A stretch of DNA of 64,000 nucleotides from Macrostomum lignano (GCA_002269645.1 NIVC01000420.1:1-64000), one strand, 5' to 3'. Shown: positions 11,271-51,626, counted from the stretch's first letter. The notes: generated from the letters alone by a model not told the origin. Translations and numbers: made by a program.

Positions 11271-11356
11271 TTTCCAAACAGTGTTCTGCCCAACACCCCG
11301 TTCTGTCAAAGCGGTTTCTGATATCCTGAGTAATCGTCGCAATTTTCAGCGCGATC

Positions 11357-29542: not shown

Positions 29543-32500
29543 ATGGACAATGCAAATTCCTTCCTAACAACTGGAGCTGTCACTGAGGGTGCGCTGATAG
29601 ATTCGCAAGATTCATTTGTGAAGTGTCCACTAAATACAAATTTTTCAAGTTCAGACATGGAAAAAAGCACTCTAGAGGCAGACCACCAAAGAGTTGATGA
29701 CTTAAAAAATCGTCAAGATAGCGAATGTTCTCAAAACTTGCCTGTTGAAATTCACCATGGCTCTCAAAGTGCTCAGGCTATTGGAGTTCATCAGAGTAAC
29801 ACATACTCAGAGTCAAGTGAAATGCATAACCAGGATCGTGCTAGTGCAGAAGATCAACCAGCGATTGATACTAATTTGAAGGGTCAGGAATCAACTGCAA
29901 ATGCACCAACTGAAAAATTGCAAGAATCCAATGAAGCATTCACTCAGCAAACTGCATTTAGCAATTCTATTGAAAATTCATCGTCTAATGGTGATTGTGA
30001 AGTAGATCAAGCTTCTGCTCCACTTGAGGATGATCAGCGTGATGCAGCACAGCAGTTGCGAGTAAATAAGTGTACTGATGCTCAGCCTGCTTCAAGTGCA
30101 AGTACTCAAGTTGCAGATGAAGGAGTATCACCACATCCGGTATCAGATGGTTTGTGCACTGTTGAACAATTAGCATCTGCAATCGGCGATACCACCGGAG
30201 AGCAGGCTGGAGTATTGGCTTCGAATAATGAAACTAAGCTGATGACGGATGACGAAGATGATGATAACGATCTTGGCTCAAATAAGAACAAATCGTTTAT
30301 GTCTTTTCACGATGAAAAAGTTTGTGAACCTGAAACTGCTAAGCCAGGCCCAGATTCAACTGAGTGTGCAGGGTCCAGCAGCAATGAAAAAGTTGGTGAA
30401 CATGAAACTGCTAAGCCAGGCCTAGATTCAACTGAGTGTGCAGGGTCCAGCAGCAATGAAAAAGTTGGTGAACCTGAAACTGCTAAGCCAGGCCTAGATT
30501 CAGCTGAGTGTGCAGGGTCCAGCAGCAATGAAAAAGTTGGTGAACCTGAAACTGCTAAGCCAGGCCCAGATTCAGCTGAGTGTGCAGGGTCAAGCAGCAA
30601 TGAAAAAGTTGGTGAACCTGAAACTGCTAAGTCAGGCCCAGATTCAGCTGAGTGTGCAGGGTCAAGCAGCAATGAAAAAGTTGGTGAACCTGAAACTGCT
30701 AAGCCAGGCCCAGATTCAGCTGAGTGTGCAGAGTCAAGCAGCAATGAAAAAGTTGGTGAACCTGAAACTGCTAAGCCAGGCCCAGATTCAGCTGAGTGTG
30801 CAGGGTCCAGCAGCAATGAAAAAGTTGGTGAACCTGAAACTGCTAAGCCAGGCCCAGATTCAACTGAGTGTGCAGGGTCCAGCAGCAATGAAAAAGTTGG
30901 TGAACATGAAACTGCTAAGCCAGGCCTAGATTCAGCTGAGTGTGCAGAGTCAAGCAGCAATGAAAAAGTTGGTGAACCTGAAACTGCTAAGCCAGGCCCA
31001 GATTCAACTGAGTGTGCAGGGTCCAGCAGCAATGAAAAAGTTGGTGAACCTGAAACTGCTAAGCCAGGCCTAGATTCAGCTGAGTGTGCAGAGTCAAGCA
31101 GCAATGAAAAAGTTGGTGAACCTGAAACTGCTAAGCCAGGCCCAGATTCAACTGAGTGTGCAGGGTCCAGCAGCAATGAAAAAGTTGGTGAACATGAAAC
31201 TGCTAAGCCAGGCCCAGATTCAGCTGAGTGTGCAGAGTCAAGCAGCAATGAAAAAGTTGGTGAACCTGAAACTGCTAAGCCAGGCCCAGATTCAGCTGAG
31301 TGTGCAGGGTCCAGCAGCAATGAAAAAGTTGGTGAACCTGAAACTGCTAAGCCAGGCCCAGATTCAACTGAGTGTGCAGGGTCCAGCAGCAATGAAAAAG
31401 TTGGTGAACATGAAACTGCTAAGCCAGGCCTAGATTCAGCTGAGTGTGCAGAGTCAAGCAGCAATGAAAAAGTTGGTGAACCTGAAACTGCTAAGCCAGG
31501 CCCAGATTCAACTGAGTGTGCAGGGTCCAGCAGCAATGAAAAAGTTGGTGAACATGAAACTGCTAAGCCAGGCCCAGATTCAGCTGAGTGTGCAGAGTCA
31601 AGCAGCAATGAAAAAGTTGGTGAACCTGAAACTGCTAAGCCAGGCCCAGATTCAGCTGAGTGTGCAGGGTCCAGCAGCAATGAAAAAGTTGGTGAACCTG
31701 AAACTGCTAAGCCAGGCCCAGATTCAGCTGAGTGTGCAGGGTCCAGCAGCAATGAAAAAGTTGGTGAACCTGAAACTGCTAAGCCAGGCCCAGATTCAGC
31801 TGAGTGTGCAGAGTCCAGCAGCAATGAAAAAGTTGGTGAACTTGAAACTGCTAAGCCAGGCCTGGGTTCAGCTGAATGTGCAGAGTCCAGCAGCAACGAA
31901 AAAGCTGAAGCTCCTCAGTCAAAAATGGCCCCCGGTGACAAGGAAAAACAGGCCGACGAAAATGCCAACGAGGATTTGGATCTAGGAGTCGGAGCTGACT
32001 TGGAATCGTTGAAAAAGGTGTCAACTGCCCCAGAGCACATGTTGGAACGAGCGTCTCATAATCACACCGTTATGTTTGACATCAGCAAGCTTAGCAATGT
32101 CAATTTTACCGAGCGCCCCCTTCCGCCCTACAGCAAATCTTGGCAACGACGCATGGATGCAGATGACTATGTTCGCCTAGCCTACCATACTAACAGATGG
32201 AGTGAAATTAGGAAAAACCTATTGTCATTATGCAGTGCTAATGTTACTTACTATCACTTGGAAGAAGTAATTATGCTCTGTGGCAGTTTAGATCGCGACA
32301 TTAATCAATTTGACGTGCTTCGGCATTTTTTTACCCAAGAAATGGAGCCAGCAGAAGCTGATCACTTGCTCAAAAATCTGTTGCCTAGAATTGTAAATCT
32401 TGCAGTCTCCCTGCCAGATCTAATCAAAGCGCCCATTCCTCTGCTGAAACACAGGAAAGTAATGAAGCTGAGTCTGTCCCAGCAGCAGATTGCTAGTCTT

Positions 32501-34380
32501 CTTGCGAATGCATTCTTCTGCACCTTTCCACAGCAAGGCGGACCTTATAGCAGGTTTCCAAGCATCAACTTTCACAGGTAAAAACTGCGAATTCTGAAGT
32601 ATTGATTGATTTCTACCTATACCCTGATCAATTAGCTCTTAGTTTGAGCTTTATTATACGTTTCTCGTAGTATGTTTTTTTTGAAAACTTGTTCCTTTTC
32701 AGTCTGTATTCGTCAGGAGGGCATCAGAGCCCGTGCGGCAGACGGTTGGAGAAGTTGCGCTGTATCTTTAACTACTTTAACAGAATCACTAAAAAAGGTA
32801 AAATGTTAAAGCAAATCAATTAGTAAATGAACCTGAAAATTGAAAGTAACACCTATTTAATGCATTGCAGAGCCATATGGTGTGGTAACCATTAGTCGCA
32901 GGCGTCTGAAACAAAACTTAGACTGGTGCTCTCGCGTTGAGCCTATTCCAAAACTACTTCACGTTAGCAGCATCGGCACCATTGAAGACACAGACGGTGA
33001 ATTTCTGGAGGCAGATTTCGCAAACAAGTACATCGGAGGCGGAGTTCTCGGTCACGGCTTTGTGCAGGAAGAGATTCGCTTCTCCATTTGTCCGGAACTC
33101 ATCGTGACCCGCTTGGTTGCCGAATGCATGGACGATCGGGAGGCTCTGCACGTGAAAGGATTCGAGAGGTTCAGCAATTACACCGGGTACGCCAATAGTT
33201 GCCAGTGGGACGGCAACCACCAAGACGCCAGGTCGATCGGACTGGACAGGCGCCGCCGGTCTCACTTGGTTGCTATGGACGCGTTGAAATTCAGCAACTG
33301 GCGAGAGCAGTTCTGCCGCAACAACATCAACAGGGAGTTGCACAAGGCTCTGGTGGCATTCGGTGACGTCCCAAGAAATCAGCGTTCTGCCATTGCCACT
33401 GGCAACTGGGGCTGTGGCGCCTTCAAAGGCGATGTGAGGCTGAAGTTTCTCATCCAGTTGATGGCCTGCGCCGTTGCTGGCCGAAGCATGGCTTACTTCA
33501 CTTTCGGTGACAAAACTCTTCAGCAGCGCCTGCTAAAAATGCACCGCTTTCTCACTGATAAAGAAGTTTGCGTTGGTGGCGTGTACAGCGCCGTGATTGC
33601 TTTCACCGAGCATCTGGACTCCAGTTGTCACGGTGGTTGGCAATATAATTCAGATTCTGCACCGGACTTGTTCGAATTTTTGCGTAATTATGTGCTTCAC
33701 GGGCCCACTGTTCCACCTCCAACTGAGCCTTCGATAAGCAAAAAAGATATTCGTAAAGCTTCGAAAAGAGCAAATGCCAACAAAAAGAAGCAAGAGCGTC
33801 AGCAGAATTCGTCGGATGTCCAAGAGTCGAAGCCAGAAAAATCGCAGCCGGAAGAGTCGAAGCCAAACAATGAACTGAGCGACCAGTCGGGGCAAGTACA
33901 GGTAGCAAACGCCGAATCAGAGAAGCAGGCAACAGCAGCAGATCTAAGCGATGCAAATTCTGGTGCCCAGGCGCAAGAGACACGCTCATCGGACGGTGAA
34001 TGGAAGCAGCAGAAAAGGAAGAATAAGCCCAACAAAAGCGGTCTCAAGTCGAGTCAAAAGTCGAAGTCTGCGACCGAGGAGCAACTGAGCAGCAAGATGA
34101 GCAATATGAATCTTTCGTCGACGACGCCACAAACCAACCGTAGGTTTGCATTTGCTGTCCGAATCCGATTTTTGCTGTCCGAACCCGATTTCATTGTCGA
34201 TTAAAACTTTTAATTTTTACAGGTGGAGAAAACAGACGTAAACGGTGCAGTGAGTCGAGCAGATCGGCCGGAGCCGGGCCGGGCGCCACCCCGCGGGGCT
34301 GCGCAGAGCAGCTTCCGGAGCCCAGTAAAAAAAAATTAAGGAAGGACAAGCGGAAAAAGCAAAACAAGAACAAAAAGTGA
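29543..34380 (+). CDS. PARG: Poly(ADP-ribose) glycohydrolase PARG-A with long repeat-rich N-terminus, 4 exons
   Basis: Exons 29543-32577, 32703-32797, 32871-34139, 34223-34380 (phases 2,1,1). SLLANAFFCTFP, DFANKYIGGGVLGHGFVQEEIRF, YTGYA, ATGNWGCGAFKGD; Lys-rich C-terminus. Confidence 0.95.
30310..31900 (+). repeat. 72-bp coding tandem repeat (22 copies of a 24-aa unit) in PARG-A exon 1
   Basis: Unit NEKVGEPETAKPGPDSAECAGSSS with few variant positions; frame preserved throughout. Confidence 0.97.
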
Positions 34381-35069
34381 TTATCAGTGTTCTGCGCATC
34401 TAGAATTGTGGTTTCAACGTTTTATTTAAAGTATTAGTAGCTACCTTCCTAAATCTGGCTTTCAACCTAATGGCCTTCTAAATATAAGAGTCTGAATCGG
34501 AAAGCCTGAAAATTGACGCGGTGAATCTATAGGTGTTCTTTGTTTAAATTAAAAAAAGTAGCTCAGAGGCTGCTGCCCATAGATCTTATATTCCATAGAT
34601 AGGCCACTTTGTATTGCGGCAATAAGGAAAGTGCGACCGCTGGTTTTCGTCACTTTTGCAAGAAAAGCCGATATGGGTTGCTACTAAAGCTACTGAAATT
34701 TTGTTTAGTAGCTAGGAGACATAGACGCTATTTTTTAGACTTCGATAGAACTTCTCATTAAGTAAGGGTATAGATATGTTCAAGCAGTAGTAGCACTGCA
34801 GAGATTACTGATGAAATTGAGTTCAGTAAATGATTTTCGCGAGTTGCAAAAGTTTTTCGCATTAGATTCTATGGCCACAACTGGTTAAATAGTAGGTTGT
34901 GTATATGCTTTTGAAGGTAGACAATGAGTGCCGAAGTGGCGAATCATTGTCTATGGAAAAACCATATGCACAAGAACATTGTCACATAGACAAAGCCTAC
35001 TGGCAATGCTTCTGATTGTCACACATTCAATATGCTTAGACCATAGACTAATGGTCTGATTTATTTATT

Positions 35070-35416
35070 TCAGTGCTCTCTAATGTAGTTGAAAAAGCGC
35101 TGGATGGCAGCCCTGATGCAGACGAGGCTTAATGCTGAATACAGTTCGCCATTGGGCTTGACCAACCAAAAATAGTAAAGACGTAGGTGCTCGTTAAGCT
35201 TCTCCAGATCCACCGTTTGTAGAGCATCCAGAGGATAGCCCAGGGAGTCCATGTAGCTTGCAAACTTCTCTCCATGCTGTAGCATTTGATGCTACAGATT
35301 TGATGCTCTGGCGCTCGCCAGACAATCGTTGTCACGCACTGGGACCGCTGATTATTTATCCATTGTTTCATGAATGTATTTTGAAATCTATAAAACAAGG
35401 TTGTTGAAGATGACAT
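35070..35416 (-). mobile_element. Degenerate Crypton-type tyrosine recombinase / KCTD1-QRICH1-ZMYM-like fragment
   Basis: LEKLNEHLRLYYFWLVKPNGELYSALSLVCIRAAIQRFF resembles the conserved N-terminal helical region of Crypton-derived proteins; frame broken by stops and shifts. Confidence 0.5.
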
Positions 35417-35985
35417 AGAAAGTTTGACTTTTACCTTTATTTTGCCACAGTTAATCGGTTTTTGAAGCTATTTATCGTTTCAACAATAGGTTATCCAAAT
35501 AATCTGGTAGACTTTCAGTCTAAAGAGGTCTAAACTTTTCTGACACGGTCATAAAATAAGTCAGACGATAAAAATTGTATTTGTCTGTTCGAACTCCTTG
35601 TTCAAAGAGGTTCTGTATAATTTGGTCTTAATAATAATTATAATAATTATAATTATAATAACAATAATAATGTCACGCCCAGCGCTGACCACACAAGTGG
35701 CCTAAGGGGAGGGGGGGCGTCAAATATATATGAAAAACAGACAAACATCGCGCCAGTTTTAAATTAGTAGATAAATAGGTTTAAAATAAATTTGTTACAC
35801 GCTCCTATTGATTTTCAAAAGGTAGCGTGTCATTGATAAAGAAAAATAGTTGCTTGCGTTTTTACGTTATTTTTATTAGGTTTTTGACGTAGGGATATAG
35901 AAGTGTTAAAAGAAACAATTATACTATTTTAGACTTTTGGATGTCTCTAGGATCAATAAGAACAAAATTGTGTCGATCTTTAAAC

Positions 35986-36254
35986 CAAGGACGACTCAAG
36001 TACGAGTAGAAGGACAATTTCTTGGAAAATTTTAGTAGCAAAAATTGATATTGCTTTCGATAGGAGGCAGATCCAATGTTCTTCTTTTGATTTGCTGCTG
36101 TGCCTTTCTTATGGCTCTATTGATATTCACAAAGTTTTTCGTTCAGAAAATTAGGATTCTTCACATCTCCGTAGTGTATTTTTTGCGAAAAAACCGGCCC
36201 CCTAAAATTTTGCAATAAACGAGGTTACCCGTCCTTTTACTTGAGACGTCCTTG
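35986..36254. mobile_element. MITE with CAAGG...CCTTG TIRs, copy 2
   Basis: Perfect 8-bp TSD CTTTAAAC (35978-35985 and 36255-36262); absent at the paralogous position upstream of PARG-B2. Confidence 0.9.
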
Positions 36255-36486
36255 CTTTAAACTTGTTTATTTTGCTTGTATTGAGAGTTTAGATTCTATA
36301 TATTCAGATTTTCTGCTTAACTGTCACATGCGAAAGAAATGTTCTTATTTTAACTTTCGCATCAAATATTAATGCTGCAACGATTCCGTTTCTTCATGCA
36401 GTAACCGAACTAAGGTTTTGCGATTTCTGTCAACTAAATATTTTGTTATTTCATCTTCCGCTGCAAAAAGCGGTTATTTTATCTCA

Positions 36487-39400
36487 ATGGGCAGCTCAAG
36501 CAGCCAGCTGAAGCGTTCCAGTTCGATGTCTTCACGTCACAAATCCCGAACGTCAGTTTCTAGAACGTCATCATTGAATAATCGGCAGATGTCACTCACG
36601 TCCGCCGCCAGACCTGCACAAGCAGCCGCGTCTCGTCGGCCGCCTCCAAACGCCTGTTGGTCCGGCGACGCTCTCGACTCTTTGCCGAAACAAAAAGTCG
36701 CAGATACGACACAGGAACTACGTCATGTGATCGAAGAATTTCGGTCTAACTGGACTCTATTCAACGCTAATATGCTAGAAGACCCCAATTCGGCTGGCAA
36801 ACTTCTTCTACGCTTTGTCAAGCCGTCAAGGAAGAATCTGGGGCCAAGGCTTTTAGATTTGCCTCATGCAGATGCCAAACGATGGAAGCACATAAAAGCC
36901 AATCTAAATAGACTTCGCTCGAATGTCACGTACAAGGATATTGAGCTTGCCATACACTCCTTCGGCAATCTAGACCACTTTCACCGACCAAAGTTGGATG
37001 TGCTGCATCATTTACTTAATAACCATTGGCCTCGGGAGAAAGTAGAAAGATTCTACCGGCATATTCTACCTGGAATGATACGTCTGGCACTCTCTCTGCC
37101 GGAACTTTTACCTGAGCAGATTCCGTTGTTAAGCCGCGGTCGACAAGCTGGTTGTCGTCCGTTGAGTTTTACTCAGCAGCAAGTTGCCTGTCTGCTCACT
37201 CACGCTTTTTTTTGCACTTTTGTGTTCCAAGGCGGTCAATATCCGAGTATCAATTTCAATGGGTATGATTTTTAAATTCTATTTTATGTGCTTTATTTTA
37301 CTATTTAATTATCAGTCTTCAATATCACCTATTAAATTTAAGAATATTTGTGTCTGGCGAATATCAAAGGCCGTGCACTCGTCGGATTGAGAAGCTGAAG
37401 TGCATCCTGCACTACATGGATCGCGTTGTTACTGACGGTATGCATTGATCCGCAGTATACCGTATAAAGGTCGTCTTATGCCACGGGTGTAATTACATGT
37501 AAAATAGCAGTTTTATAGAAGTTTATCGAGCAAAACGTAAACAAAACGGGTGTGTCGTTTTACCAGTTATCCCGATTAAAAACGACAATGAGCAGAGTAC
37601 AGGCATAGCAACAAAAACTGTCAATGGAAAGTGTCACCCCGTGTCCGTGTCTGATATTTGAAGGATGGAAGCTCTAAAGCTAAGCACTTGATATTTCATT
37701 GTTTTTGTTACAACTCCAATACTTAATATCGCATTTTCAGCACCGCTAGGAGTGATCACGATCAGCCGGAAATGCCTTCGACACAGAGTTAATTGGTCGG
37801 AAAGAACTGAGCCGATGCCTGACCGATTGCACGTTTCGTCCACTGGGACAATTGAAGACACAGATGGTGGCTTCTTGGAGGTTGATTTTGCAAACAAATT
37901 TCTTGGCGGAGGAGCTCTTGGACACGGATTGGTGCAGGAAGAGATCAGATTTATGATTAGTCCCGAGCTAATAGTGACTAGACTAGTTACTGAGTGCCTC
38001 GATGACAACGAAGCCCTACTAATTGAGGGGTTCGAGAGATTCAGCGACTACTCGGGCTATGCCGACTCTTTCAGGTGGATCAGCAACCACAAAGATTCAC
38101 GACCGGTTGGTGTAGACAGGCGGCGTTTATCGCAGCTGGTTGCCATGGATGCGGTGTGTTTCCGAAGCTGGATTGAGCAGTTCAGTGTCTATAACATTGA
38201 ACGAGAGCTTCACAAAGCTTTGGTCGCATTCGGCGATGTAAAAGACAATAAGAGCGGTGCGCAGCAACATGGCGCAGTTGCCACTGGCAACTGGGGTTGT
38301 GGCGCGTTCAAGGGTGATGTCAGGCTGAAATTTCTCATCCAGTTGATGGCATGCTCACTCGCCAGGCGGCCTGTGGCGTACTTCACATTCGGGGATCAGC
38401 CACTTCAGCAGCGCCTCGTGGAGATGCATCAGTTCCTCATAAATAATAATGTTACAGTGGGTGGCGTCTACAACGCTCTGCTTGCCTACGTAGCTGAACT
38501 AAATGCAGGGTCCCATCGTGCTCGACGCCAAGAAATGACTGCGCAGTCTGCGCCAGACTTATTTCGTTTTGTGCTCAATTATGTCCAATCGACGCGTGGT
38601 CCTTCTTTTTACGATCCAGCTGCGAATTCCAATGTTCCTTACCCGTCTACCAATGGGAAGCATCCAGAACGCATAGCGGAAACTGATCAAAGCGGTGAGC
38701 GACAGAATTGGCAACAGTCAACGGAGACATCAGGACAGCAGCGGACAGACCCCGGAGAGAATGTCAGCACACATGGTGCACCAGCTGGACAAAGCTTTGA
38801 CCATCAGAATCGGCAACAGCCAACGGAGATGTCACGACAGCAGCGGACGGACCCCGGAGCGAATGTCAGCACACATGGTGCACCAGCTGAACAAAGCTTT
38901 GGGCATCAGAATCGGCAACAGCCAACGGAGATGTCACGACAGCAGCGGACGGACCCCGGAGCGAATGTCAGCACACATGGTGCACCAGCTGAACAAAGCT
39001 TTGGGCATCAGAATCGGCAACAGCCAACGGAGATGGCAGGACAGCAGACTGACCCGAGAGCGAACGTCAGGACACAGGGTGCACCAGCTGGACAAAGCGT
39101 TAGACAACACAATCAGAAAAATAAGAAGGCTAGTAAGTCAAATGGGAAGAAGAGAGGCAATGCGGAGAGTCAATCTGAAGCATCTGTTGGCTGTTTCGGC
39201 AAATCTAAACAAACAAATGTTCGTCGTAGTGTTTCTCCAAAAAAACCTGGAAAAGGTAATTGCTTAGTTGATTTTTGCATTTATTTTTATGGATTAATTT
39301 AGTTATCAATGTGATCAATTCTCATTTTTAGCCATCTTTGCCTAAAATATAGATTTTAGCGCTCAGTTAAAGAAGTTTTCTGTACCATTCAAGAATCTCT

Positions 39401-39823
39401 TCTCTGTATTGGTTTTTTCCGTCTGTTACCATGTTGATATGGCAAAAACTGTTTTTGCATTAAACTAAAGTATTTTCACGCCCAGTTAAAGAAAAATTTG
39501 CTGCCTAAGACACAGAGTTTTTTACGAGCTAACTGCTGTAACAATTGGTCTGTTCAGAAAGATAAAAAAATAATGCTCTGCTTTGAGTGCTCAAGAACGC
39601 TAAAAACTATATTAACTCAAGTACAGGTGAACTCAAAGCTCATATATAAATCTAAACATAATCTTAACATTTATGTTTTTTAGATCGGCCGTCGTCGATT
39701 CGAGAATCGGGTAGATCAAATCCAAGCGATCGAAGATCAACAGAGGGGGAAAATGCCAATCTGGTTTCAAGTAATACGAATTCTGCAGCCAGGATAGCAA
39801 GGCGTATGGTTGAAGCAAATTAA
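36487..39823 (+). CDS. PARG: PARG-B1, 4 exons
   Basis: Exons 36487-37262, 37343-37437, 37741-39255, 39684-39823 (phases 2,1,1; exon 2 is 95 nt as in PARG-A). DFANKFLGGGALGHGLVQEEIRF, YSGYA, GNWGCGAFKGD; starts MGSSSS. Confidence 0.93.
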
Positions 39824-40891
39824 AATAGAACTCTGCTTATGTTACAGATGTGTAGTCTTCACTCGAGTTATTAAATGTTATTAATTCAAATTATTAAATG
39901 TGATTTTACGAGCTGAACACAAAGACCAACAGTAACTTTTTCAGGAACAAACGTGCAGAGTTGTTTGTTTTTTATTCAATTTGAAAGATGAATCGATTCT
40001 GTAAGTTCAACTTCTCTTGCCGTTTTTACGGAATTGTTTTTCAACTTTGCTCAACTTTTTGCTGTCTCAATATATCCAAGCTGTTTTATTGGGTCACGGA
40101 GTTTTAAGTACGTGATCTGGGAGTGGAAACTGACGCTTGTGAAGTTTAAATCCCAATCAATACACAATAGAGTACACACTATCTGACGATAAGACATATT
40201 CGGGGTGCTCCGGGCTCAGCTGTGTGGTCATGCTTGAGTACGAGTACCTTCTCGCTTGGCTGACTAGCACTCATACCGCCCTAAAAATAACTAAAAAACT
40301 TGTGATATCTGTGATCCTTTTGGCAGTCAGTTTCTATTCCAGAGTTTTGTTCCTTGGTACTTCGGGACTGCGTTGCACTGCCACACTTACTTGTCGCTTT
40401 CAGACAGACCGCGATTCTGCCTCGCTAGAATTTTACTGATGCCGCTGTTCAGATTCTGGATGCCCGGCATAAAGTATTCCAAATCGTTTATCCCAATGTG
40501 TCTTGTCTTTTGGAAAGCCTTACATTTTTTAACTTCTCAACCAATTGCTATTACAGATTTTTGTACAACATTTCCTTGCTTCAAGGACCAATTTTTGATA
40601 CGTTTTCTTATTACGAAGCTATACATGTGAAAAAAATCTTTGAAACATTCCTTTTGCTTTTTAAAAGTACTTTTGTGCTAATTTTTAAAAAATGTAATTA
40701 AAAATTAAACTAACTCTGCAGATTGTTTTTTGTTTAAATGTTTTTAAGTAATGCTTACTTCACACTATTAAAGTTCAAATTGAACTATTTTTAACTTTGA
40801 ATTTCTTAAAATGTGTTTTTGAATTTCAAATACGGGTTGAGTTTTTTCCCATTATCTTATCAAATAATTTTTTTAATAATTTTTTAATACT

Positions 40892-41235
40892 GTCTCACAT
40901 GATGTCTCACGTGATCACAGAGAATGTCTCGCATGATCACAGAGCATGTCTCGCATGATCACAGAGCATGTCTCGCATGATCACAGAGAATGTCTCACAT
41001 GATCACAGAGAATGTCTCACATGATCACAGAGAATGTCTCACATGATCACAGAGAATGTCTCACATGATCACAGAGAATGTCTCACATGATCACAGAGAA
41101 TGTCTCACATGATCACAGAGCATGTCTCACATGATCACAGAGAATGTCTCACATGATCATAGAGAATGTCTCACATGATCACAGAGAATGTCTCACATGA
41201 TCATAGAGAATGTCTCACATGATCACAGAGAATGT
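40892..41235. repeat. 22-bp minisatellite (ATGTCTCACATGATCACAGAGA) downstream of PARG-B1
   Basis: Tandem copies; paralogous array at 47412-47845. Confidence 0.95.
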
Positions 41236-41249
41236 ATCACGTGAACCCA

Positions 41250-41900
41250 TCCGCTCTTAGTTTGATCATTGCAGTATACTCTTGTTATACGTTTCTCGTA
41301 GTATTTTTTTGCAAAATTGTTTCTTTCCAGACTGTAATCGTCAGACAGACACTGCAGAGCCATGCAACAGATGGTTGGAGATGTGTTGAATGTTTAACTA
41401 TTTTAGCCATCGCTAAAAAGGTAAATTATTTGGATTTCAATGCAATTCAATTGTTTAGTAGTAAACCTGAAAATTGCAAGTAGATCGCATAACCTATGCA
41501 ATGCATTGCAGAGCCATATTTTGCATATGCTGTCCGATTTCACGGTCGATGAAAACATTTTTTACTTTTTACAGGTGCAAAAAGCAGTGAGTCAAGCAGA
41601 TCGGCCGGAGCTGGGCCGCGGGCGCCATCCCGGTGGGCTGCGCAGGGCAACTCCGTAGCCTGATCTAAAAAATAAAAAGGCCATCCTGAGAAAGCTGAAA
41701 TAGAAAAAAGAAGTGATTACCTATGTTCTCCGCATCTGGAATTATTGTTAACGTTTTCTTTAAAGTTTAGTAGAATTCTTCTTAAATCTGGTTTCAAGCC
41801 TAACGGCTTTTTAAATATAACAAAGTTTGAATAGCAAAAAACTTAAAATAACGAGGACATAGACGCGGTTAATCCATGGGTGTTTATAAAACTAAAAAAC
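41250..41900 (+). pseudogene. Relic of a PARG-A-type gene with the catalytic exon deleted
   Basis: Homologous in order to PARG-A intron 1, exon 2 (41331-41420, in-frame TAA), intron 2 and the first 8 nt of exon 3 (AGCCATAT), fused directly to intron 3 sequence, then the last exon (41575 onward) and 3' UTR. Confidence 0.85.
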
Positions 41901-42736
41901 GTATTTTAAGCATCTCAGAGGCTGTCTTTTTACAGTAGGTTACGTAATGCAACCTCTAAAACGAGGTTGTTGACGATGACATGATAATTTTGAGCCTTAC
42001 CTGGTATCTTTATTTTGCCACTGTTATTCAGTTTCTAAAGCTATTCATTGTATCAGTGACGGGATATGCTCGAATAATCCGATACGGATTTTCGATTGAA
42101 GATGTCTAACTTTTCAGATACGGTCATATGATGAATCTTGCGATACAAAATGCATTTGTCAAATTGAATTCCACGTTCGAATGAGGTTCTGTATAATTAG
42201 GTTATAAATGTACATTTTGCTCGCACGCTGGGATAGATTTTCCTAAGGTAGCGTGTCATTGATAAAAATATTTTCTTGCGGTTTTAAGTTATTTTTGTCG
42301 GTGTTTTCACTTAGGGATCTACAGTTGTAAATAGAAACAGTAATCCTATTTTTTGACTTGCGAATATCTCTAGAATAACCAGAGATATTAAATTAAATAA
42401 CCAGAGATATATAACGTCGATTTTAAATTTTAAATTTTAAAGTTTAGATTTTAAATTCTTTCGATGTTAAGAATTTATTATTATTGAACTTGTTGATTTT
42501 ACTTGCATTGAGCGCTTAAATCTATATTTAGACTTTCTGTTCAATTGTCTAAAACAATTAACTGCACATGCCCAAGAAATCTCATACTCGTATTTCAACT
42601 TTTGCATCACATTTTAATGCTGCAACGATTCTGTTTCTTTCAGCAGTAAAACCTCGGAACTGAGGCTTAGCGATTCTGTAAGCAAAATATTTTGGTTATT
42701 TCATCTTCAGCTGCAAAAAGCGGTTATTTTATCTCA

Positions 42737-45700
42737 ATGGGCAGCTCAAGCAGCCAGCTGAAGCGTTCCAGTTCGATGTCTTCACGTCACAAATCCCGAA
42801 CGTCAGTTTCTAGAGAGTTATCATTGAATAATCGGCAGATGTCACTCACGTCCGCTGCAAGACCTGCACAAGCAGCCGCGTCTCGTCGGCCGCCTCCAAA
42901 CGCCTGTTGGTCCGGCGACGCTCTCGACTCTTTGCCGAAACAAAAAGTCGCAGCTACGACACCGGAATTACGTAATGTGATCGAAGAATTTCGGTCTAAC
43001 TGGACTCTATTCAACGCTAATATGCTAGAAGACCCCAATTCGGCTGGCAAACTTCTCCGGCCGCGCCTTGTCAAGAAGATGGAGCCAAGGCTTTTGGATT
43101 TGCCTCATGCAGATGCCAGACGATGGAAGCACGTAAAAGCCAATCTAAATAAACTTCGCTCGAATGTCACGTCCGAGGATATTGAGCTTGCCATATATTC
43201 CTTTGGCAATCTAGACCACTTTCACCGACCAAAGTTGGATGTGCTGCATCATTTACTTAATAACCATTGGCCTCGGGAGAAAGTAGAAAGATTCTACCGG
43301 CATATTCTACCTAGAATGATACGTCTGGCACTCTCTCTGCCGGAAATTTTACCTGAGCAGATTCCGTTGTTAAGCCGCGGTCGACAAGCTGGTTGTCGTC
43401 CGTTGAGCTTCACTCAGCAGCAAGTTGCCAGTCTGCTCACTCACGCTTTTTTTTGCACTTTCGTGTACCAAGGCGGTCAATATCCAACTATCAATTTCAA
43501 TGGGTATGATTTTTAATTTCTTTTTTTATGTGATTAATTTTACTATTTAATTATCAAGTCTTTAATATCACCTATTAAATTTAAGAATATTTGTGTCTGG
43601 CGAATATCAAAGGCCGTGCACTCGTCGGATTGAGAAGCTGAAGTGCATCCTGCACTACATGGATCGCGTTGTTACTGACGGTATGCATTGATCCGCAGTA
43701 TACCGTATAAAGGTCGTCTTATGCCATGGGTTTAGTTGACGAATGTACGTGTAAAATAGCTGTTTAACAGTAGGAATACCAAGCCATTTTTCCGCCCGTC
43801 GAACTACCAAGAGGGGGGGGGAATCCCCCCCTGACAATTTTTTTGCTGCGCAGGAACGGAGCAACGCAGGCACACGAAATTCAAGAACACGGGCTGACTT
43901 TTTGTTGTGCACCTTCTCAAACAAGAATCAAGTCGCCAGTCCTCCGGACCGTCGAAATATTCGACGATTCTGCCAGAAAGTCTGATTTTTCCCATAAGCG
44001 CTAGTGTATTCAGTACACCCCTGTGCGCCAATTAGCACTGCGCCTCAGTGCAGCCTTGCCAAGTCTCCAAATTTCATCAGCACGTCGACCACATGTGTCT
44101 GCATCAGCTCTGACTTCGTTGGTCACTAGCCTTCACCCAGGTGGAGCTTCTGGACCCTCAACAGCTGTGGCACCAGGTGACTATGGACACCCTGATGCGG
44201 ATTTCTCTAGTTTCGCCGATCAAGCCTCGACAGTGGGCAAGAATCAACCGTCAGACATTCTCAGCTAGTCTCTCAAGCATTCCGTCATCATCCCGACGCC
44301 GTCGGCAAAAAATTGTCAGGGGGGGGAATTTCCCCCCCCCCTCTTGGTAGTTCTACTGTTAATGAGAAATGGGGGTGTCGTTGTTACTAGCTATTTAAAT
44401 TGTTAACAAATACAATAAGCTAAGACGCAAAAGTACAGACAAGAAGAAAAATTGTCGGTAGGGAAGTGCCGCGCGAGTGTGTCTATCTAGAACCTCTATA
44501 GGAGGATAGGACCTACATGTATAAAGCTACGAGTGTAAGCACGATATTTCATTGTTTTTTTTACAACTCCAATACTTAATATCGCATTTTCAGCACCGCT
44601 AGGAGTGATCACAATCAGCCGGAAATGCCTTCGACACGGAGTTAATTGGTCGGAGAGAACTGAGCCGATGCCTGACCGATTGCACGTTTCGTCCACTGGG
44701 ACAATTGAAGACACAGGTGGTGGCTTCTTGGAGGTTGATTTTGCAAACAAATTTCTTGGCGGAGGAGCTCTTGGACACGGATTGATGCAGCAGGAGATCA
44801 GATTTATGATTAGTCCTGAGCTAATAGTGACTAGACTAGTTACCGAGTGCCTCGATGACAATGAAGCCCTACTAATTGAGGGGTTCGAGAGATTCAGCGA
44901 CTACTCGGGCTATGCAGACTCTTTCAGGTGGATCGGCGATCACAAAGATTCACGACCGGTTGGTTTGGACAGACGGCGTTCATCGCACCTGGTTGCCATG
45001 GATGCGGTGTGTTTCCGAAGCTGGATTGAGCAGTTCAGTGTCTATAACATTGAACGAGAGCTCCACAAAGCTTTGGTAGCGTTCGGCGATGTAAAAGACA
45101 ATAAGAGTGGTGCGCAGCAACATGGCGCAGTTGCCACTGGCAACTGGGGTTGTGGCGCGTTCAAGGGTGATGTCAGGCTGAAATTTCTCATCCAGTTGAT
45201 GGCATGCTCACTCGCCAGGCGGCCTGTGGCGTACTTCACATTCGGGGATCAGCCACTTCAAAAGCGCCTCGTGGAGATGCATCAGTTCCTCATAAATAAT
45301 AATGTTACAGTGGGTGGCGTCTACAACGCTCTGATTGCCTACGCAGATGAACTAACACTAACTGTAAGGTCCCATCATACTCGACGCCAAGAAATGACTG
45401 CCCAGTCTGCGCCAGACTTGTTTCAATTTGTGATCTATTACGTCCAATCAACGCGCGGTCCTTCTTTTTACGATCCAGCTGCGAATTCCAATGTTCCAAT
45501 GCTGTCGACCAATGGGAAGCATCCAGAACGCATAGCGAAAACTGGTCAAAGTGGTGAGCGACAGAATTGGCAAAAGTCAGCAAAGATGTCAGGACAGTGG
45601 ATACCCAGAGCAAGTGTCAGCACACATGATGCACCAGCTGGACAAAGCGGTGAGCATCAGAATCGGCAACAGCCAACGGAGATTTCAGGACAGCAGACTG

Positions 45701-46475
45701 ACCCGAGAGCGAACGTCAAGACACATGGTGCACCAGCTGGACAAAGCGTTAGACAACACAATCAGAAAAATAAGAAGGCTAGTAAGTCAAATGGGAAGAA
45801 GAGAGGCAATGCAGAGAGTCAATCTGAAGCATCTGTTGGCTGTTTCGGCAAATCTAAACAAACAAATGTTCGTCGTAGTGTTTCTCCAAAAAAACCTGGA
45901 AAAGGTAATTGCTTAGTTGATTTTTGCATTTATTTTTATGGATTAATTTAGTTATCAATGTGATCAATTCTCATTTTTAGCCATCTTTGCCTAAAATATA
46001 GGTTGTAGCACTCAGTTAAAGAAATTTTCTGTTCCATTTACGAATCTCTGTATTGGTTTTTTCCGTCTGTTACCATGCTGATATGGCGAAAAAAGTTTTC
46101 AACTAAAGAATTTTCACGCCCAGTTGAAGAAAAATTTACTGCCTAAGACAGATTTAACTGCTGTAACAATTGGTCTGTTCAGAAAGATTAAAAAATAATG
46201 CTCTGCTTTGAGTGCTCAAGAACGCTAAAAACTATATTAACTCAAGTACAGGTGAACTCAAAGCTCATATATAAATCTAAACATAATCTTAACATTTATG
46301 TTTTTTAGATCGGCCGTCGTCGATTCGAGAATCGGGTAGATCAAATCCAAGCGATCGAAGATCAACAGAGGGGGAAAATGCCAATCTGGTTTCAAGTAAT
46401 ACGAATTCTGCAGCCAGGAGAAGAAGGCGTAAGGTTGAAGCAAATAAGAACTCTGCTTATGTTACAGATGTGTAG
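42737..46475 (+). CDS. PARG: PARG-B2, recent paralogue of B1 with QQE in place of QEE, 4 exons
   Basis: Exons 42737-43503, 43586-43680, 44594-45904, 46309-46475; near-identical to B1; signature reads GGGALGHGLMQQEIRF. Confidence 0.92.
43768..44358. mobile_element. Non-autonomous TIR element flanked by TTAA, in PARG-B2 intron 2
   Basis: TTAA|CAGTAG...CTACTG|TTAA; long subterminal inverted repeats (GAACTACCAAGAGGGGG...CCCCCTGACAATTTTT); missing from the homologous B1 intron (303 vs 913 bp). Confidence 0.85.
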
Positions 46476-47411
46476 TCTTCACTCGAGTTATTAAATGTTA
46501 TTAATTCAAATTATTAAATGTGATTTTACAAACTGAACACAAAGACCAACAGTAACTTTTTCAGGAACAAACGTGCAGAGTTGTTTGTTTTTTATTCAAT
46601 TTGAAAGACGAATCGATTCTGTAAGTTCAACTTTTCGATAGTTTATGCCAAAAAAGATATATAACTTCTCTTGCCGTTTTGGCGGAATTGTTTCTCAACT
46701 TTGCTCAACTTTTTGCTGTCTTAATATATCCAAGCTGTTTTATTGAGTCACGGAGTTTTAAGTAAATGATCTGGGGTGGAAACTGACGCTTGTGAAGTTT
46801 AAATTCTAATAAAGAGAGAGTAAAAACTATCTGACGATAAGATTTACAAAATTCAGGTGCTCCGGGCTCAGCGGTGTGGTCATGCTTGAGTACCTTATTG
46901 CTGGCTATAACACTCACACCGTAAAAAAACTAATTAAAAAATAACAAAAAATAACATGTGACATCTGTGATCCTTTTCATCAGTTTCGGGACTGCCATTT
47001 ACTTGTCGCTTACAGACAGACCGATTGTGCCCCGCTATTAATTTTACTGATGCCGCTGTTCAGATGCTGGATGCCGGCCATAAAGTATTCCAACTCGTTT
47101 ATCCCGATGTGATTTTTCTTTTGGAAGGCCTAATTTTTTTAAGTTTTTAGCCAATTTGCTAATGCAGATTTTTGTATAACATTTTCTTGCTTCAACGACC
47201 AATTTTGATAAGTTCTCTTATTACCAAGTTATACATGTAAAAAATCTTTGAGACATTCCCTTTGTTTTTTTAAAGTGCTTTCGTGTTAATTGTAAAAAGT
47301 TGTAACTAAAATAACCCTACTTTTTTAAGATAAAAATTTATCTGTTTTTCTACCAAGCATTTTGTGACTCGTCTTCTTCAATTTCAAAAACATGAAATTC
47401 AAGAAAAACAA

Positions 47412-47845
47412 TGATGTCTCACATGATCACAAAATATGTCTCACATGATCACAAAATATGTCTCGCATGATCACAAAGTATGTCTCACATGATCACAAAG
47501 GATGTCTCACATGATCACAAAAGATGTCTCACATGATCACAAAATATGTCTCACATGATCACAAAATATGTCTCGCATGATACAAAAGATGTCTCACATG
47601 ATCACAAAATATGTCTCACATGATCACAAAGTATGTCTCACATGATCACAAAAGATTCTCACATGATTACAAAAGATGTCTCACATGATCACAAAGTATG
47701 TCCCACAATGTCACAAAAGATGTCTCACATGATCACAAAAGATGTCTCACATGATCACAAAAGATGTCTCACATGATCACAAAAGATGTCTCACATGATC
47801 ACAAAAGATGTCTCACATGACCACAGAGAATTTCTCACATGATCT
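47412..47845. repeat. 22-bp minisatellite (ATGTCTCACATGATCACAAAAG) downstream of PARG-B2
   Basis: Same family as 40892-41235 with different diagnostic bases. Confidence 0.95.
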
Positions 47846-48069
47846 GTCTGACATGAACCCAGACGATGTTTCATAGATCCCTTAGGACGTTTCACGTGTA
47901 CCCAGAGAATTTCTTTTATGATTCAAAAGAATGTCTCTCTTAGAGCTCTTTGGCCTGTTCAAATTGTATTGCAAGTGTATTTGTTCAGAAATTTGAGGTT
48001 TCTTTACCCCATCTTTCAGTTCAGCCTAAAGGCAATCTACCTCAGTCTCCAGGGCTCTCGCAGACAAAG

Positions 48070-48627
48070 ATGACGGGCAAACGGCAGCAGCCCGACCCGT
48101 TTGACTATCCGTCTTCTCTAGCATTCGGCATTATTGTTGGCTACGCGTTGGCTCTACTATTCGCGGTAATCATTGCTGCAATTCGACGCAAAAACTGCTG
48201 CAAAATTGTCGGTCCTAGCAGCGACAACTACCACTTGGTCCGCTTGGAGAGAACCGAGGTGGAACCGCTAACCTCGACGCCCGGTCGTGAAGTAGAGAGC
48301 AACACTGACTCACCAACCAGAGTTGCTAACATCGCTGTCGCCCAGACAACAGAGCCTACGGTCGCGAATGCAGATATTGTCACGGTAGAACTCGCACTCA
48401 CTGGGTCAGAAACGGAGCGAGAAACTACAGCGGCAGCTGAGCCTGACGAAGTTGAAACAGAAGATGAAGTTAAAAGGCTGCGTCGCCTGACGAAGCAGCT
48501 GGACGCCATTTTGGACGAGTTCAACGCTGATGAGACAGACGACCGAATAGTGCTCGAACTCGCGCAGGAGATCGTGTCTACAGCTATACGTCAAGCTGTT
48601 GAAATTTGTCACGCCGAAAGCAATTAG
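48070..48627 (+). CDS. Orphan single-pass membrane protein with C-terminal AKAP-like amphipathic helix (upstream exon possible)
   Basis: TM segment LAFGIIVGYALALLFAVIIAAI followed by RRKNCC, an acidic tail, and IVLELAQEIVSTAIRQAVE near the C-terminus. Confidence 0.7.
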   Translation: MTGKRQQPDPFDYPSSLAFGIIVGYALALLFAVIIAAIRRKNCCKIVGPSSDNYHLVRLERTEVEPLTSTPGREVESNTDSPTRVANIAVAQTTEPTVANADIVTVELALTGSETERETTAAAEPDEVETEDEVKRLRRLTKQLDAILDEFNADETDDRIVLELAQEIVSTAIRQAVEICHAESN

Positions 48628-48847
48628 TTTTTTTTCTACGCAAGTACAATGGGAAGTGGTGCTCAATTTTGGATTTTTTTGTTTTGATTTTGACTTCTGT
48701 GTCAAAGCGACTGCACGGCGCTATGTACTGCTAGTCTCTTTAACAGTTGCAGAGCCTGGCCATCTTTCTGTACTTTTTTATGCCAGAAATAGTGTTTTAT
48801 TAATTTTGTTATTAATGTTACAAAGGACTCGCATTCAAAGTGTCGAA

Positions 48848-49405
48848 TGACTGTCAGGGCCAATTGACTGTCGGTGACAATTGTCTGTCAGTGCCAACTG
48901 ACTGTCAGTGCCAATTGACCGTCAGTGCCAATTGACTGTCAGTGCCAATTGACTGTCAGTGCCAATAGACTCAGTGACATTTGACCGTCAGTGCCAATTG
49001 ACTGTCGTTGACAATTGTCTGTCAGTGCCAATTAACTGCCAGTGCCAATTGACTGTCGGTGACAATTGACTGTCAGTGCCAATTGACTGTCAGTGTCAAT
49101 TAACTGTCAGTGCCAATTGACTGTCAGTGCCAATTGACTCAGTGACATTTGTCTGTCAGTGCCAATAGACTCAGTGACATTTGACCGTCAGTGCCAATTA
49201 ACTGTCAGTGCCAATTGACTGTCAGTGCCAATTGACTGCCAGTGCCAATTTACTGTCAGTGCCAATTAACTGTCAGTGCCAATTGACTGTCAGTGAAATT
49301 TGACTGTCAGTGCCAATTGACTGCCAGTGCCAATTTACTGTCAGTGCCAATTAACTGTCAGTGCCAATTGACTGTCAGTGAAATTTGACTGTCAGTGCCA
49401 TTTTA
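48848..49405. repeat. 17-bp minisatellite (TTGACTGTCAGTGCCAA)
   Basis: Tandem copies visible. Confidence 0.95.
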
Positions 49406-50007
49406 CTTCTAGTGACAATTGTTAACGCCATAATTTGCTAACCATAAGAGCATCAGCTAGAAGTTCCGATTCTTCGAGATTTGTTTTAAACGGAAGCTTT
49501 GTTCATCATGCAACATTATACATTCGTCTTCTTATTATTGTGCACAGAATCTTTTTTGTGTCTTCGTACTGACTGCATGTTTATTTTCAGTAATAATTTC
49601 TAATAGCTTGAAATGCCATCTTTTTGGGTATTAAACTTTTGCAAAAAAAATAAATAAAATCAGCTGATTGTTGTCCTATTTATTGTACAACATTTGTGTG
49701 CCTTGTTAGCTTGTTTTGTTATATTTGCTTTGTGCTTTTAAAAACTAAATTTGTGCTTGATGCTACTTTTGTCAGTAGCGTGACGCGATTGCTCTATAGA
49801 TTTTTTGACGCAGGTTTTTTTTGACATGCGCGCTGGCGGCTGTCGCACCATTTTAATAAAAACTGCTTTGCCTGGCTTCCTGTGTAGACAGAGGTTTATT
49901 GCACAATCCATTATTGGCTCAAGATTTACGAGTATTGATCATTGATGATTTTGTTAAGTTTATTGAATTCTTTAATATAATGACACCATCTGCCGCAAGC
50001 GCAAAGA

Positions 50008-50581
50008 CCATCTGACTAAAATCCCATAAGACCATCTGACTAAAATCCCATAGGACCATCTGACTAAAATCCCATAGGACCATCTGACTAAAATCCCATA
50101 GGACCATCTGACTAAAATCCCATAAGACCATCTGACTAAAATCCCATAGGACCATCTGACTAAAATCCCATAGGACCATCTGACTAAACTCCCATAGGAT
50201 TATCGAACTAAAATCCCATAGGACCATCTGACTAAAATCCCATAGGACCATCTGACTAAAATCCCATAGGACCATCTGACTAAAATCCCATAGGACCATC
50301 TGACTAAAATCCCATAGGACCATCTGACTAAACTCCCATAGGACCATCTGACTAAAATCCCATAGGACCATCTGACTAAAATCCCAAAGGACCATCGAAC
50401 TAAAATCCCATAGGACCATCGGACTAAAATCCCATAGGACCATCTGACTAAAATCCCATAGGACCATCTGACTAAAATCCCATAGGACCATCTGACTAAA
50501 ATCCCATATGACCATCTGACTAAAATCCCATAGGACCATCGGACTAAAATCCTATATGACCATCTGACTAAAATCCCATAG
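50008..50581. repeat. 24-bp minisatellite (ACCATCTGACTAAAATCCCATAGG)
   Basis: Tandem copies visible. Confidence 0.96.
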
Positions 50582-51289
50582 GGCCGTGCGATCAGATTTA
50601 AGTCCATTTTAATATATTTCGACATTAAAATGCTAAGAAAACTCTAAAACATTTAAAAATACTACTTTAAGTAAGATACAGTATATTTTACCACCTTCAA
50701 TTTTTCTGCCCAATTTCTAAAAAATGAGTTCCTAAATGTTCCCAAAAATGTTGAAAAATTGACGAAAAACTTTTTACCATCTTTAAAGAAGTGATAAAAT
50801 TCTACATCCAGTTCCGCTACTTTTTGCTGAGTTCCCTCCGAAGATCACGGTTCACTCGTTTTGCCAGAATGAAGAAACTCCCAAAAGAAAAAGTCTTTAG
50901 GAATAAAATTTCCAGGATTTTTTTGTCTATCTGGGAGCCCGAGGGAAAGTTCAGAAATTTGACAGGTGCGAAGGCATTGAGAAGAATTGAATTAGGGGGG
51001 GGGGCGTGACGGCCCAGGGCTGCCGTATCCACAGCAGCCGGTTTTGCATGCATTTGTAATTAGCCAAGCCAGCGACAAAATTTTGGCTAGCAAAGTCAAA
51101 CAGGCTGGAGGGAGCTGAGGGCAGTGCAAATACTTGATGCCTCAAAATGCGCCTTGAGTACTACTCAAATGCTCGTATGGATGAATACAGTCAATACGGA
51201 ACCGATTCAACTTGGGTTCTGGTGTGGTTAAGTGTTAAATTTTCTTTTTATTCAATTTCTTTTCGGGAGGGCTGCTGGAACCCTGAAGC

Positions 51290-51530: not shown

Positions 51531-51626
51531 GAAATTCTCGAATATTAGGATGAGTAAAGATTGGATTAGTAGAAGGGATATTGCTAGTTGAGGTAGGGAG
51601 TTTTCAAGGGAAGATATGGGTCGGGG

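Follow-up and report, generated by a model that had tools for sequence, protein, structure and literature searches.

We show that the 64,000-nt stretch of the Macrostomum lignano genome considered here (GCA_002269645.1, NIVC01000420.1:1-64000; below, the window) contains a genuine tandem cluster of poly(ADP-ribose) glycohydrolase (PARG) paralogues, in which three intact genes and one dead remnant follow each other on the plus strand in the order A, B1, relic of A and B2. Taking all the results together it is probable that A and B1 are active enzymes, that B2 is an attenuated one, and that the two B genes were homogenised at some time after the cluster had formed. The cluster has more to it than was noticed at first, but it is an ordinary case of a well-known enzyme family that has expanded within one lineage.

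Six long open reading frames (ORFs) between 29.5 and 46 kb carry either the PARG_cat_N (PF20811) or the PARG_cat_C (PF05028) domain and are arranged N-C, N-C, N-C. A, B1 and B2 are each hit by both Pfam domains at E-values between 1e-18 and 1e-77, far above gathering scores, and phmmer against human PARG structures gave E = 3e-94. Each of the three genes is an uninterrupted four-exon coding sequence in which every splice site is GT-AG, exon 2 is 95 nt long in all of them, and the first two introns are in identical phases. This is in accordance with the first-pass annotation of this DNA, which had proposed three intact PARG genes and one relic on the plus strand with common intron positions and a 95-nt exon 2, except that the exons number four and not three. 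Our own initial three-exon models ended in short unsupported tails and were dropped, while GenBank products based on RNA sequencing (RNA-seq) show an extra short 3' intron and a small exon 4. A tblastn search of the window found no PARG pieces beyond A, B1, the relic and B2.

Gene A (29543..34380, plus strand) encodes 1518 aa in exons 29543-32577, 32703-32797, 32871-34139 and 34223-34380, the last of them modelled from the GenBank product, and is 98% identical to the PAA protein BOX15_Mlig021441g2. Ahead of its catalytic domain lie about 830 acidic, Ser-rich residues which include 24-aa repeats, and its tail is Lys-rich. The repeats are encoded in exon 1 by a 72-nt tandem repeat, NEKVGEPETAKPGPDSAECAGSSS, for which Tandem Repeats Finder (TRF) gives 22.1 copies here (30312..31904, plus strand) and of which only 6.1 copies are present in a second assembled copy of the locus, described below; the array is thus a large in-frame coding variable-number tandem repeat. 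Other frames of the 72-nt unit are open as well, as is the minus strand, where it gives a 529-aa ORF; older annotation was misled by this, and the annotated A product of 1398 aa is 120 aa, that is five repeat units, shorter than the genomic ORF. A Pfam match of A to phage Gp5_trimer_C was set aside as an artefact, as it has no significant stretch and sits in the low-complexity repeat.

Gene B1 (36487..39823, plus strand, 841 aa; exons 36487-37262, 37343-37437, 37741-39255 and 39684-39823) and gene B2 (42737..46475, plus strand, 779 aa; exons 42737-43503, 43586-43680, 44594-45904 and 46309-46475) have an MGSSSSQ start, both beginning with MGSSSSQLKR (36487-36516 and 42737-42766) followed by a Ser/Arg-rich stretch, and in B2 this ATG is preceded by an in-frame stop. 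Judged by eye, the start fits the PROSITE-type N-myristoylation pattern G-{EDRKHPFYW}-x(2)-[STAGCN]-{P}; such a putative N-myristoylated terminus with basic residues after it would be unusual for a PARG. At the other end both proteins have Gln-rich 34-aa repeats and basic clusters. TRF finds 3.9 copies of a 102-nt unit in the B1 tail (38703..39098, plus strand) and 2.4 copies of a degenerate 99-102-nt unit in that of B2 (45542..45770, plus strand), and this region of B2 differs in length from that of B1 by 210 nt, in frame. The gene models therefore agree with the differences in N-termini (a repeat tether against MGSSSS) and in C-terminal repeats noticed at first reading.

The B genes also differ in the catalytic loop. 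Gene A (GGGVLGHGFVQEE, 33035-33073) and B1 (GGGALGHGLVQEE, 37905-37943) agree with the signature GGG-X6-8-QEE and have both loop glutamates (human E755 and E756), whereas in B2 (GGGALGHGLMQQE, 44758-44796) the signature fails, the first Glu being replaced by Gln and an invariant Val by Met (VQEE to MQQE). The contrast of QEE with QQE, already seen at first reading, was confirmed in the codons, which are CAG GAA GAG at 37935-37943 in B1 and CAG CAG GAG at 44788-44796 in B2; the Gln codon CAG at 44791-44793 is two nucleotide changes away from the GAA of B1. Despite the failed signature B2 belongs to the PARG family by descent and fold. A, the canonical M. lignano PARG gene and 24 metazoan domains served to polarise the differences between B1 and B2. 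V352M and E354Q proved to be B2-derived and to fall in columns without variation among metazoan PARG domains (24 of 24) and other sequences (34 of 34), while no conserved column has a B1-derived change. The same MQQE is found in PAA70250.1, the B2 allele of the second locus copy, so it is not a sequencing error.

The other active-site motifs are retained in all three proteins, with DFAN (human Asp737 and Asn740), TGY (Tyr795), the G873-A-F diphosphate loop and YFTFGD (Phe902) present in A, B1 and B2; the roles of these human residues in ADP-ribose binding have been described (PMC3519477). Position 876 in human numbering is Lys instead of Gly, but PARGs vary at this position (R, N or G). An AlphaFold model of the second-copy B2 allele superimposes on human and mouse PARG structures with target-normalised template modelling (TM) scores of 0.84-0.87; the mean predicted local distance difference test (pLDDT) value is 75, the core is above 90, and residues 1-54 and 577-631 are disordered. 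Like canonical metazoan PARG (human 4A0D, 4B1G and 4B1H; mouse 4FC2), A, B1 and B2 have the same two domains, helical and macro fold, and the canonical motifs DFAN, GGG-X7-QEE, TGY, GNWGCGAF and YFTFGD are also present in A and B1. They differ from it in their repeat-rich disordered termini, which are unrelated to the canonical ones, in having three introns only and, in the case of B2, in having MQQE in place of VQEE.

The Glu replaced in B2 corresponds to human E755 and mouse E748, the residue that binds the ribose 2''-OH. Exactly this substitution, of the first Glu of QEE by Gln, has been made in mouse PARG as E748Q, which keeps the wild-type loop conformation and has only residual activity (PMC3897571), and its structure (PDB 4N9Y) is among the fold matches of the B2-allele model. 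Two other changes at this position, E755A and the E755N-equivalent, abolish PAR hydrolysis, with inhibitor binding kept in the Asn mutant (PMC3519477, PMC11920425), and E755A retains weak activity on ADP-ribosylated RNA (PMC3519477, PMC11920425). Since all residues known to be needed for PAR hydrolysis are kept in A and B1, these two are most likely active PAR glycohydrolases, as far as sequence allows to say. Because Gln takes the place of the ribose 2''-OH-binding Glu, B2 is, by analogy with the mouse mutant, most likely a strongly attenuated but not dead PAR hydrolase which would still bind ADP-ribose and which would have been retained as a coding gene. The analogy is not complete: E748Q is a laboratory point mutant, while B2 has the neighbouring V-to-M change in addition and differs from B1 by about 8% elsewhere, and the activity of B2 is a predicted one.

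The relic of A (41250..41657, plus strand), delimited by self-BLAST, reading of the sequence, pairwise alignment and tblastn of the A tail, has no exon 1. Its contents start with the 3' part of intron 1, homology to A opening inside A intron 1 at about 32635-32651, and A 32651-32878 matches relic 41282-41519 at 73% in self-BLAST. The exon-2-like segment (41331-41420) is 90 nt long with a TAA at codon 2 and several indels, although its AG and GT splice sites are kept. Intron 2 comes next, and then only 8 nt from the start of exon 3 (41512-41519), which are fused to an intron-3-like segment (41520-41574), and the exon-4-like segment starts from 41575; what is deleted corresponds to A 32879-34144, 1266 bp that comprise the rest of exon 3 with the whole macro domain and the first 5 nt of intron 3. 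The stop, the indels and the loss of the macro domain mean that the relic cannot encode a PARG. In this comparison BLAST blocks and manual reading were used, as a global MAFFT alignment was misleading.

Self-BLAST of the window, which covers the self-comparison of 29-48 kb proposed as a check, gives five collinear direct blocks that run from intron 1 of A through to a minisatellite, and B1 36257-40703 matches B2 42484-47311 at 85-92%. Spacer 1, from A to B1 (34381..36486), is matched by spacer 2, from the relic to B2 (41658..42736), which is collinear with parts of it. Spacer homology was thus correctly recognised at first reading, but it is limited to three blocks (34185-34503, 35382-35626 and 35771-35953; 73-75% in self-BLAST, and 76-77% with a Jukes-Cantor (JC) distance of 0.27-0.29 when aligned), or about 770 bp of the 2.1 kb of spacer 1, while 34540-35380 has no counterpart. 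On the minus strand of spacer 1, two overlapping ORFs at 35070-35416 (71 and 95 aa), in the part unmatched in spacer 2, had no match in Pfam; one of them looks like a piece of a genuine protein (...LRLYYFWLVKPNGELYSALSLVCIRAAIQRFF...) and may be left over from a transposon. Each unit is closed by an array of the same 22-bp minisatellite, with 15.6 copies at 40902..41244 and 19.7 copies at 47413..47844 (TRF), and the two arrays are 77-85% identical in self-BLAST. They start 1079 bp past the B1 stop codon and 938 bp past that of B2; lying about 1 kb beyond the stop codons, they close the units but are not gene ends, as had been supposed.

These observations support the origin of the cluster by tandem segmental duplication of a unit with A sequence, spacer and B. 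As homology to A opens in intron 1, the preserved unit consists of the 3' part of A, the spacer, B, the 3' flank and the minisatellite, and the relic does not reveal whether it once included exon 1 of A. The unit was first described as A, spacer and B duplicated in one event, of which the collinear blocks stand, while only the 3' part of A is preserved and the single event does not fit the divergence. The relic and spacer blocks (956 aligned nt) are 77.1% identical, with a JC distance of 0.27. All non-coding sequence of the B genes (1636 aligned nt) is 90.2% identical (JC 0.105), and it is itself uneven: the introns (626 aligned nt) are about 95% identical (JC 0.05), the 5' flank (226 aligned nt) 85.0% (JC 0.17) and the 3' flank (784 aligned nt) 88.0% (JC 0.13). 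The difference in divergence between relic plus spacer and all B non-coding sequence is highly significant (Fisher p = 4e-19). Between B1 and B2 exon 2 is identical at 95 of 95 positions, perfect runs reach 230 bp, and synonymous divergence (dS) is 0.084.

The simplest model is one recent tandem duplication of A, spacer and B with no later conversion, after which the relic and the spacer merely decayed faster. It accounts for the collinear blocks and for the same minisatellite at the end of both units. However, the spacer and the B introns are both expected to be near-neutral, yet they differ with JC 0.27 as against 0.05, and the intermediate values of the B flanks form a gradient of conversion type, so this model is disfavoured and we consider it very improbable. 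Neutral sequence that is unequally diverged across the unit does not fit a single duplication, and since the B bodies are about five times less diverged than the duplicated spacer, they were later homogenised by gene conversion or B was duplicated again. The gradient is centred on the B gene body, which, on the divergence values, probably indicates gene conversion, of which it is the typical product; to separate conversion from a second duplication of B alone an outgroup species would be needed. The segmental duplication is in either case several times older than the similarity of B1 and B2 suggests. This indicates a two-stage history, an old segmental duplication and then conversion or re-duplication of B, which is new here. 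After A and B had diverged, the segment from intron 1 of A through B to the downstream minisatellite was copied in tandem, the extra A copy decayed by a stop codon, indels and the 1266-bp deletion of its macro-domain exon, and the B copies were later homogenised by gene conversion, or B was duplicated anew, all of this before the two assembled locus copies separated. A MITE-like insertion (miniature inverted-repeat transposable element) of about 560 bp in intron 2 of B2 (43798..44356), recognised by its inverted repeats, has G-run terminal inverted repeats of about 45-50 bp and occurs in B2 of both locus copies but in B1 of neither; it marks a time after the last B homogenisation and before the locus-copy split. 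A related MITE-like fragment lies 13 kb downstream at 57101-57453.

A 30,076-bp segment around the gene of PAA83400.1 on contig NIVC01000420.1 of the Mlig_3_7 assembly is 100% identical to window 26400-56475. The second locus copy is found in the same assembly, Mlig_3_7, on the consecutively numbered contigs NIVC01001254.1 and NIVC01001255.1. The former contains the Ets gene, an 87-aa gene, A and a B1-type gene, and ends about 90 bp into the minisatellite; the latter starts with 730 bp of minisatellite, continues with the relic, a B2-type gene (PAA70250.1) and a 201-aa gene, and aligns in one piece to window 40902-53032 at 96.3%. The first minisatellite of this copy has at least 33 repeats, and the assembly broke there. 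Its B1 is 99.75% identical to B1 of the window, with one substitution and one single-base indel in the coding sequence (CDS), the latter a deletion near the 3' end (CDS nt 2370) that may be a PacBio error or a real allelic frameshift, while its gene span is about 92% identical to B2 of the window. The CDS of the second-copy B2 has 22 substitutions and three single-base indels in comparison with B2 of the window, and some of the variant sites match B1.

Tandem repeats are very abundant in the M. lignano genome, and the assembly contains redundancy, duplicated blocks of at least 95% identity making up 180 Mb of it (PMC5730564); the DV1 line is a hidden polyploid with extra chromosomes (PMC5730564; PMC10468722). 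Both circumstances, together with a unit junction that adjoins the minisatellite at exactly the place where the other locus copy broke, would allow B1 and B2 to be haplotypes or homeologues of one gene that were misjoined in tandem at the minisatellite. Against such an artefact, both assembled locus copies have B1-type and B2-type genes, which means that B1 and B2 predate the divergence of the locus copies. B1 and B2 also differ by 8-15%, as against 0.04-1% between the locus copies in genes, that is four to fifty times more. Furthermore, minisatellite 1 is followed by the relic and minisatellite 2 by an unrelated gene, and the window contig covers the whole cluster without a gap. With its own B1 and its own relic and B2 in the second copy, and with different sequence after each minisatellite, uncollapsed haplotypes, a doubt raised in the first-pass annotation, do not explain the pair, and we regard a misassembly as the least credible of the alternatives, close to negligible.

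Selection on the B genes was estimated from the ratio of nonsynonymous to synonymous divergence (dN/dS) between B1 and B2, which is 0.50 overall, 0.37 in the catalytic region and 0.30 in the macro domain, and rises to 0.68 in the disordered N-terminal tail and 0.90 in the disordered C-terminal tail. The B genes are under weaker constraint than PARGs normally show. All four coding indels between them (3, 12, 6 and 210 nt) are multiples of three, compared with 5 of 25 non-coding ones; frame-keeping indels and the low odds of an open frame under neutrality suggest that both B genes are kept as coding sequences.

It can still be argued that B2, as a recent duplicate, is turning into a pseudogene, with E-to-Q as the first disabling hit and the ORF open because of its youth or through repair by conversion from B1. 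This would fit the overall dN/dS of 0.50 with tails near 1, the B2-specific changes at two invariant catalytic-loop positions, the MITE in intron 2, a dN/dS of 0.56 between the B2 alleles with 22 substitutions as against one in B1 and a frameshifted tail in the second allele, as well as a probability of about 0.1 that the ORF stays open neutrally if half the substitutions fell on B2. However, the macro-domain ratio of 0.30 is well under 1, 20 of the 25 non-coding indels would have broken a frame which all four coding indels keep, MQQE is fixed in both locus copies, and E-to-Q is the most conservative change, with which mouse PARG keeps its fold and some activity. We therefore regard incipient decay of B2 as rather unlikely, although of all alternatives it has to be taken most seriously.

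Macrodomain and PARP genes are known targets of genetic conflicts in other animals, AtPARG2 is pathogen-induced in Arabidopsis and the repeat tails of the Macrostomum proteins are variable, all of which could speak for a host-pathogen or other arms race that drives diversifying selection on erasers of ADP-ribosylation. The B1/B2 dN/dS, which was among the checks suggested at first reading, gives no signal of diversifying selection: with 0.30-0.50 there is no sign of an arms race, the ratio is below 1 wherever measured, and what evolves fastest are the disordered repeat-rich tails, approximately neutrally. No viral or transposon-linked context is evident in the region beyond ordinary MITEs. Conflict as the driving force is therefore not upheld and seems highly unlikely; at first reading host-pathogen conflict had been named as one example of a setting for division of labour.

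The annotation of Mlig_3_7 was derived from a genome-guided RNA-seq transcriptome (PMC5730564), and GenBank models exist for A in both locus copies, for B1 in the second copy (740 aa) and for B2 (PAA70250.1). Such RNA-seq-guided models argue against a lack of expression of the B-type genes, a doubt raised at the outset, but they do not tell apart which B copy is expressed. An exact-sequence look-up of the B protein models for transcript contigs gave no match, and literature searches on Macrostomum PARG or Mlig gene identifiers returned nothing relevant. The A and B proteins are already in GenBank and UniProt under automatic PARG names, and an older public model of 1500 aa merges A and B1 with the beginning of the downstream 201-aa gene.

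Several observations weigh against the picture of active A and B1, a retained attenuated B2 and later homogenisation of the B pair. The indels of the second-copy B2, three within 30 nt (CDS nt 1873-1900), truncate its tail at 631 aa; they may be PacBio errors or real decay or allelic frameshifts. An intact B2 ORF would arise by neutral chance with P of about 0.1-0.015, which makes it only weakly unlikely (1.5-10% of trials). Pairwise dN/dS cannot be divided between B1 and B2 and is blurred by gene conversion, and of the polarised amino-acid changes 10 fall on B2 and 6 on B1, with 16 ambiguous, which is no significant difference. One GenBank model, PAA83400.1 (window 36400-46475), joins exons 1-2 of B1 to exons 3-4 of B2 and skips 7 kb; as exon 2 is identical in B1 and B2 this chimera may be a mapping artefact, or else a real long-range splice, and it leaves transcript evidence for each copy ambiguous. 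The myristoylation and nuclear-localisation readings come from motifs alone, and the tree discussed below was built by neighbour-joining (NJ) only and has long branches.

The canonical PARG of M. lignano, PAA92746.1 with two near-identical assembly copies, is situated on other contigs, directly downstream of a cysteine synthase gene (e.g. NIVC01000040.1). Several UniProt entries fuse the two ('Cysteine synthase 1', 1337-1386 aa), hence the 90% cluster mixes both names. Canonical PARG is 45-47% identical to A and B, whose catalytic domains are about 54-60% identical to each other with saturated dS. The NJ tree, built from 30 PARG catalytic domains over 395 columns with 300 bootstraps, gave the grouping (canonical,(A,(B1,B2))) with bootstrap values 94/100/100. 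Introns 1 and 2 of A and B coincide in position with two introns of the canonical gene, which has two more in the macro domain that are absent from A and B; the common positions point to duplication at the DNA level followed by loss of the two macro-domain introns. A and B are thus paralogues of the M. lignano lineage, descended from the canonical PARG and then strongly diverged. An exhaustive HMMER search of 1.84 billion representative proteins found more than 50% identity to B1 only in M. lignano, the fused model of A, B1 and the downstream gene being one of these proteins, and searches for orthologues of A and B in other organisms likewise gave nothing above 50%. In a control search with the canonical PARG, however, no other Macrostomum species appeared among the proteins searched, so the lack of A/B relatives says nothing about the genus and the age of the expansion within it cannot be set. 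The lineage-specific module of the first-pass annotation thus has the tree on its side, but with congeners absent from protein databases it cannot be dated within the genus.

It was also assumed at first that most animals have a single PARG gene, which needs to be modified as duplications are not rare. The closest functional precedent for the Macrostomum cluster is found in Arabidopsis, where PARG1 and PARG2 are adjacent as a result of tandem duplication and one copy, with GGL-X7-QEE and no detectable activity, is retained and regulated (PMC4287526). The plant event is independent, the residue altered is the third Gly as opposed to the first Glu in B2, and, unlike in Macrostomum, an architecture of relic plus conversion has not been described there. 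Among Spiralia, bdelloid rotifers (Adineta) and the cestode Schistocephalus solidus show other lineage-specific amplifications, in which a single predicted protein holds a tandem of two or three complete PARG catalytic domains, each of which keeps QEE. These copies are fused in one predicted polypeptide and lie outside the Macrostomum A/B group in the NJ tree; they could be either real fusions or merged tandem genes. Caenorhabditis elegans, like M. lignano, has more than one PARG, the two paralogues parg-1 and parg-2 (PME-3 and PME-4) being reported to differ in localisation and to be both active, but they are not in tandem and are unrelated to the Macrostomum duplication.

The genes that flank the cluster are ordinary animal genes. 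Upstream lie a soluble guanylate cyclase HNOB/HNOBA exon (744-1553, minus strand), a Tctex-1 dynein light chain gene (3567-4121, plus strand), an intron-poor SLC26 sulfate transporter in a single ORF of 829 aa (4908-7397, minus strand) and an Ets-domain factor (24795-25247, plus strand); downstream lies the 201-aa gene, which has no Pfam match. In keeping with the repeat-rich genome, minisatellites are extremely dense, and TRF gives 47 rows of tandem repeats in the 64 kb with periods of 10-118 nt. Examples of minisatellites are 10578-11275, 15972-16548, 19401-19932, 52782-53745 and 54642-55577, several of them inside long ORFs, and some are strand-skewed in composition, GC skew reaching -0.41 at 10-12 kb.

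PARG is usually a single essential gene in animals, with isoforms that serve different compartments. In place of one gene with isoforms, M. lignano has four genes (canonical, A, B1 and B2), so that a genetically tractable flatworm has split PARG into separate genes, one of which naturally has a well-studied hypomorphic active-site change. A and B differ in their disordered targeting regions, from which partitioning by location or partner, similar to that of the mammalian PARG isoforms, is probable, and a division of labour among them, as judged from the differing termini, is plausible. A further step, namely that B2 is a retained attenuated PARG with an intact pocket, that the B proteins are myristoylated and that all four members form a spatially partitioned system of de-PARylation, is unlikely, and we mention it as speculation. 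If it were true, B2 would be a slow eraser, a 'reader' of PAR or ADP-ribose, or an enzyme shifted to non-PAR substrates, e.g. ADP-ribosylated RNA ends. The B-type proteins would be targeted to membranes, with the repeat-tethered A and the canonical PARG completing the system in a regenerating, radiation-tolerant flatworm, and conversion would keep the B pair alike while selection would hold the difference in the catalytic loop apart.

Knowledge of the PARG mechanism is not changed by these results, and lineage-specific PARG duplicates have precedents. The locus exposes faulty public gene models, i.e. the B1/B2 chimera and the fusion of A with B1, and it shows compactly, in the genome of a hidden polyploid, how after a duplication one partner decays while the other undergoes gene conversion. 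Points worth following up are the natural E-to-Q paralogue and the conversion signature. With transgenesis and RNA interference available, M. lignano offers a natural experiment on the partitioning of PAR erasure and on the use of a weakly active PARG.

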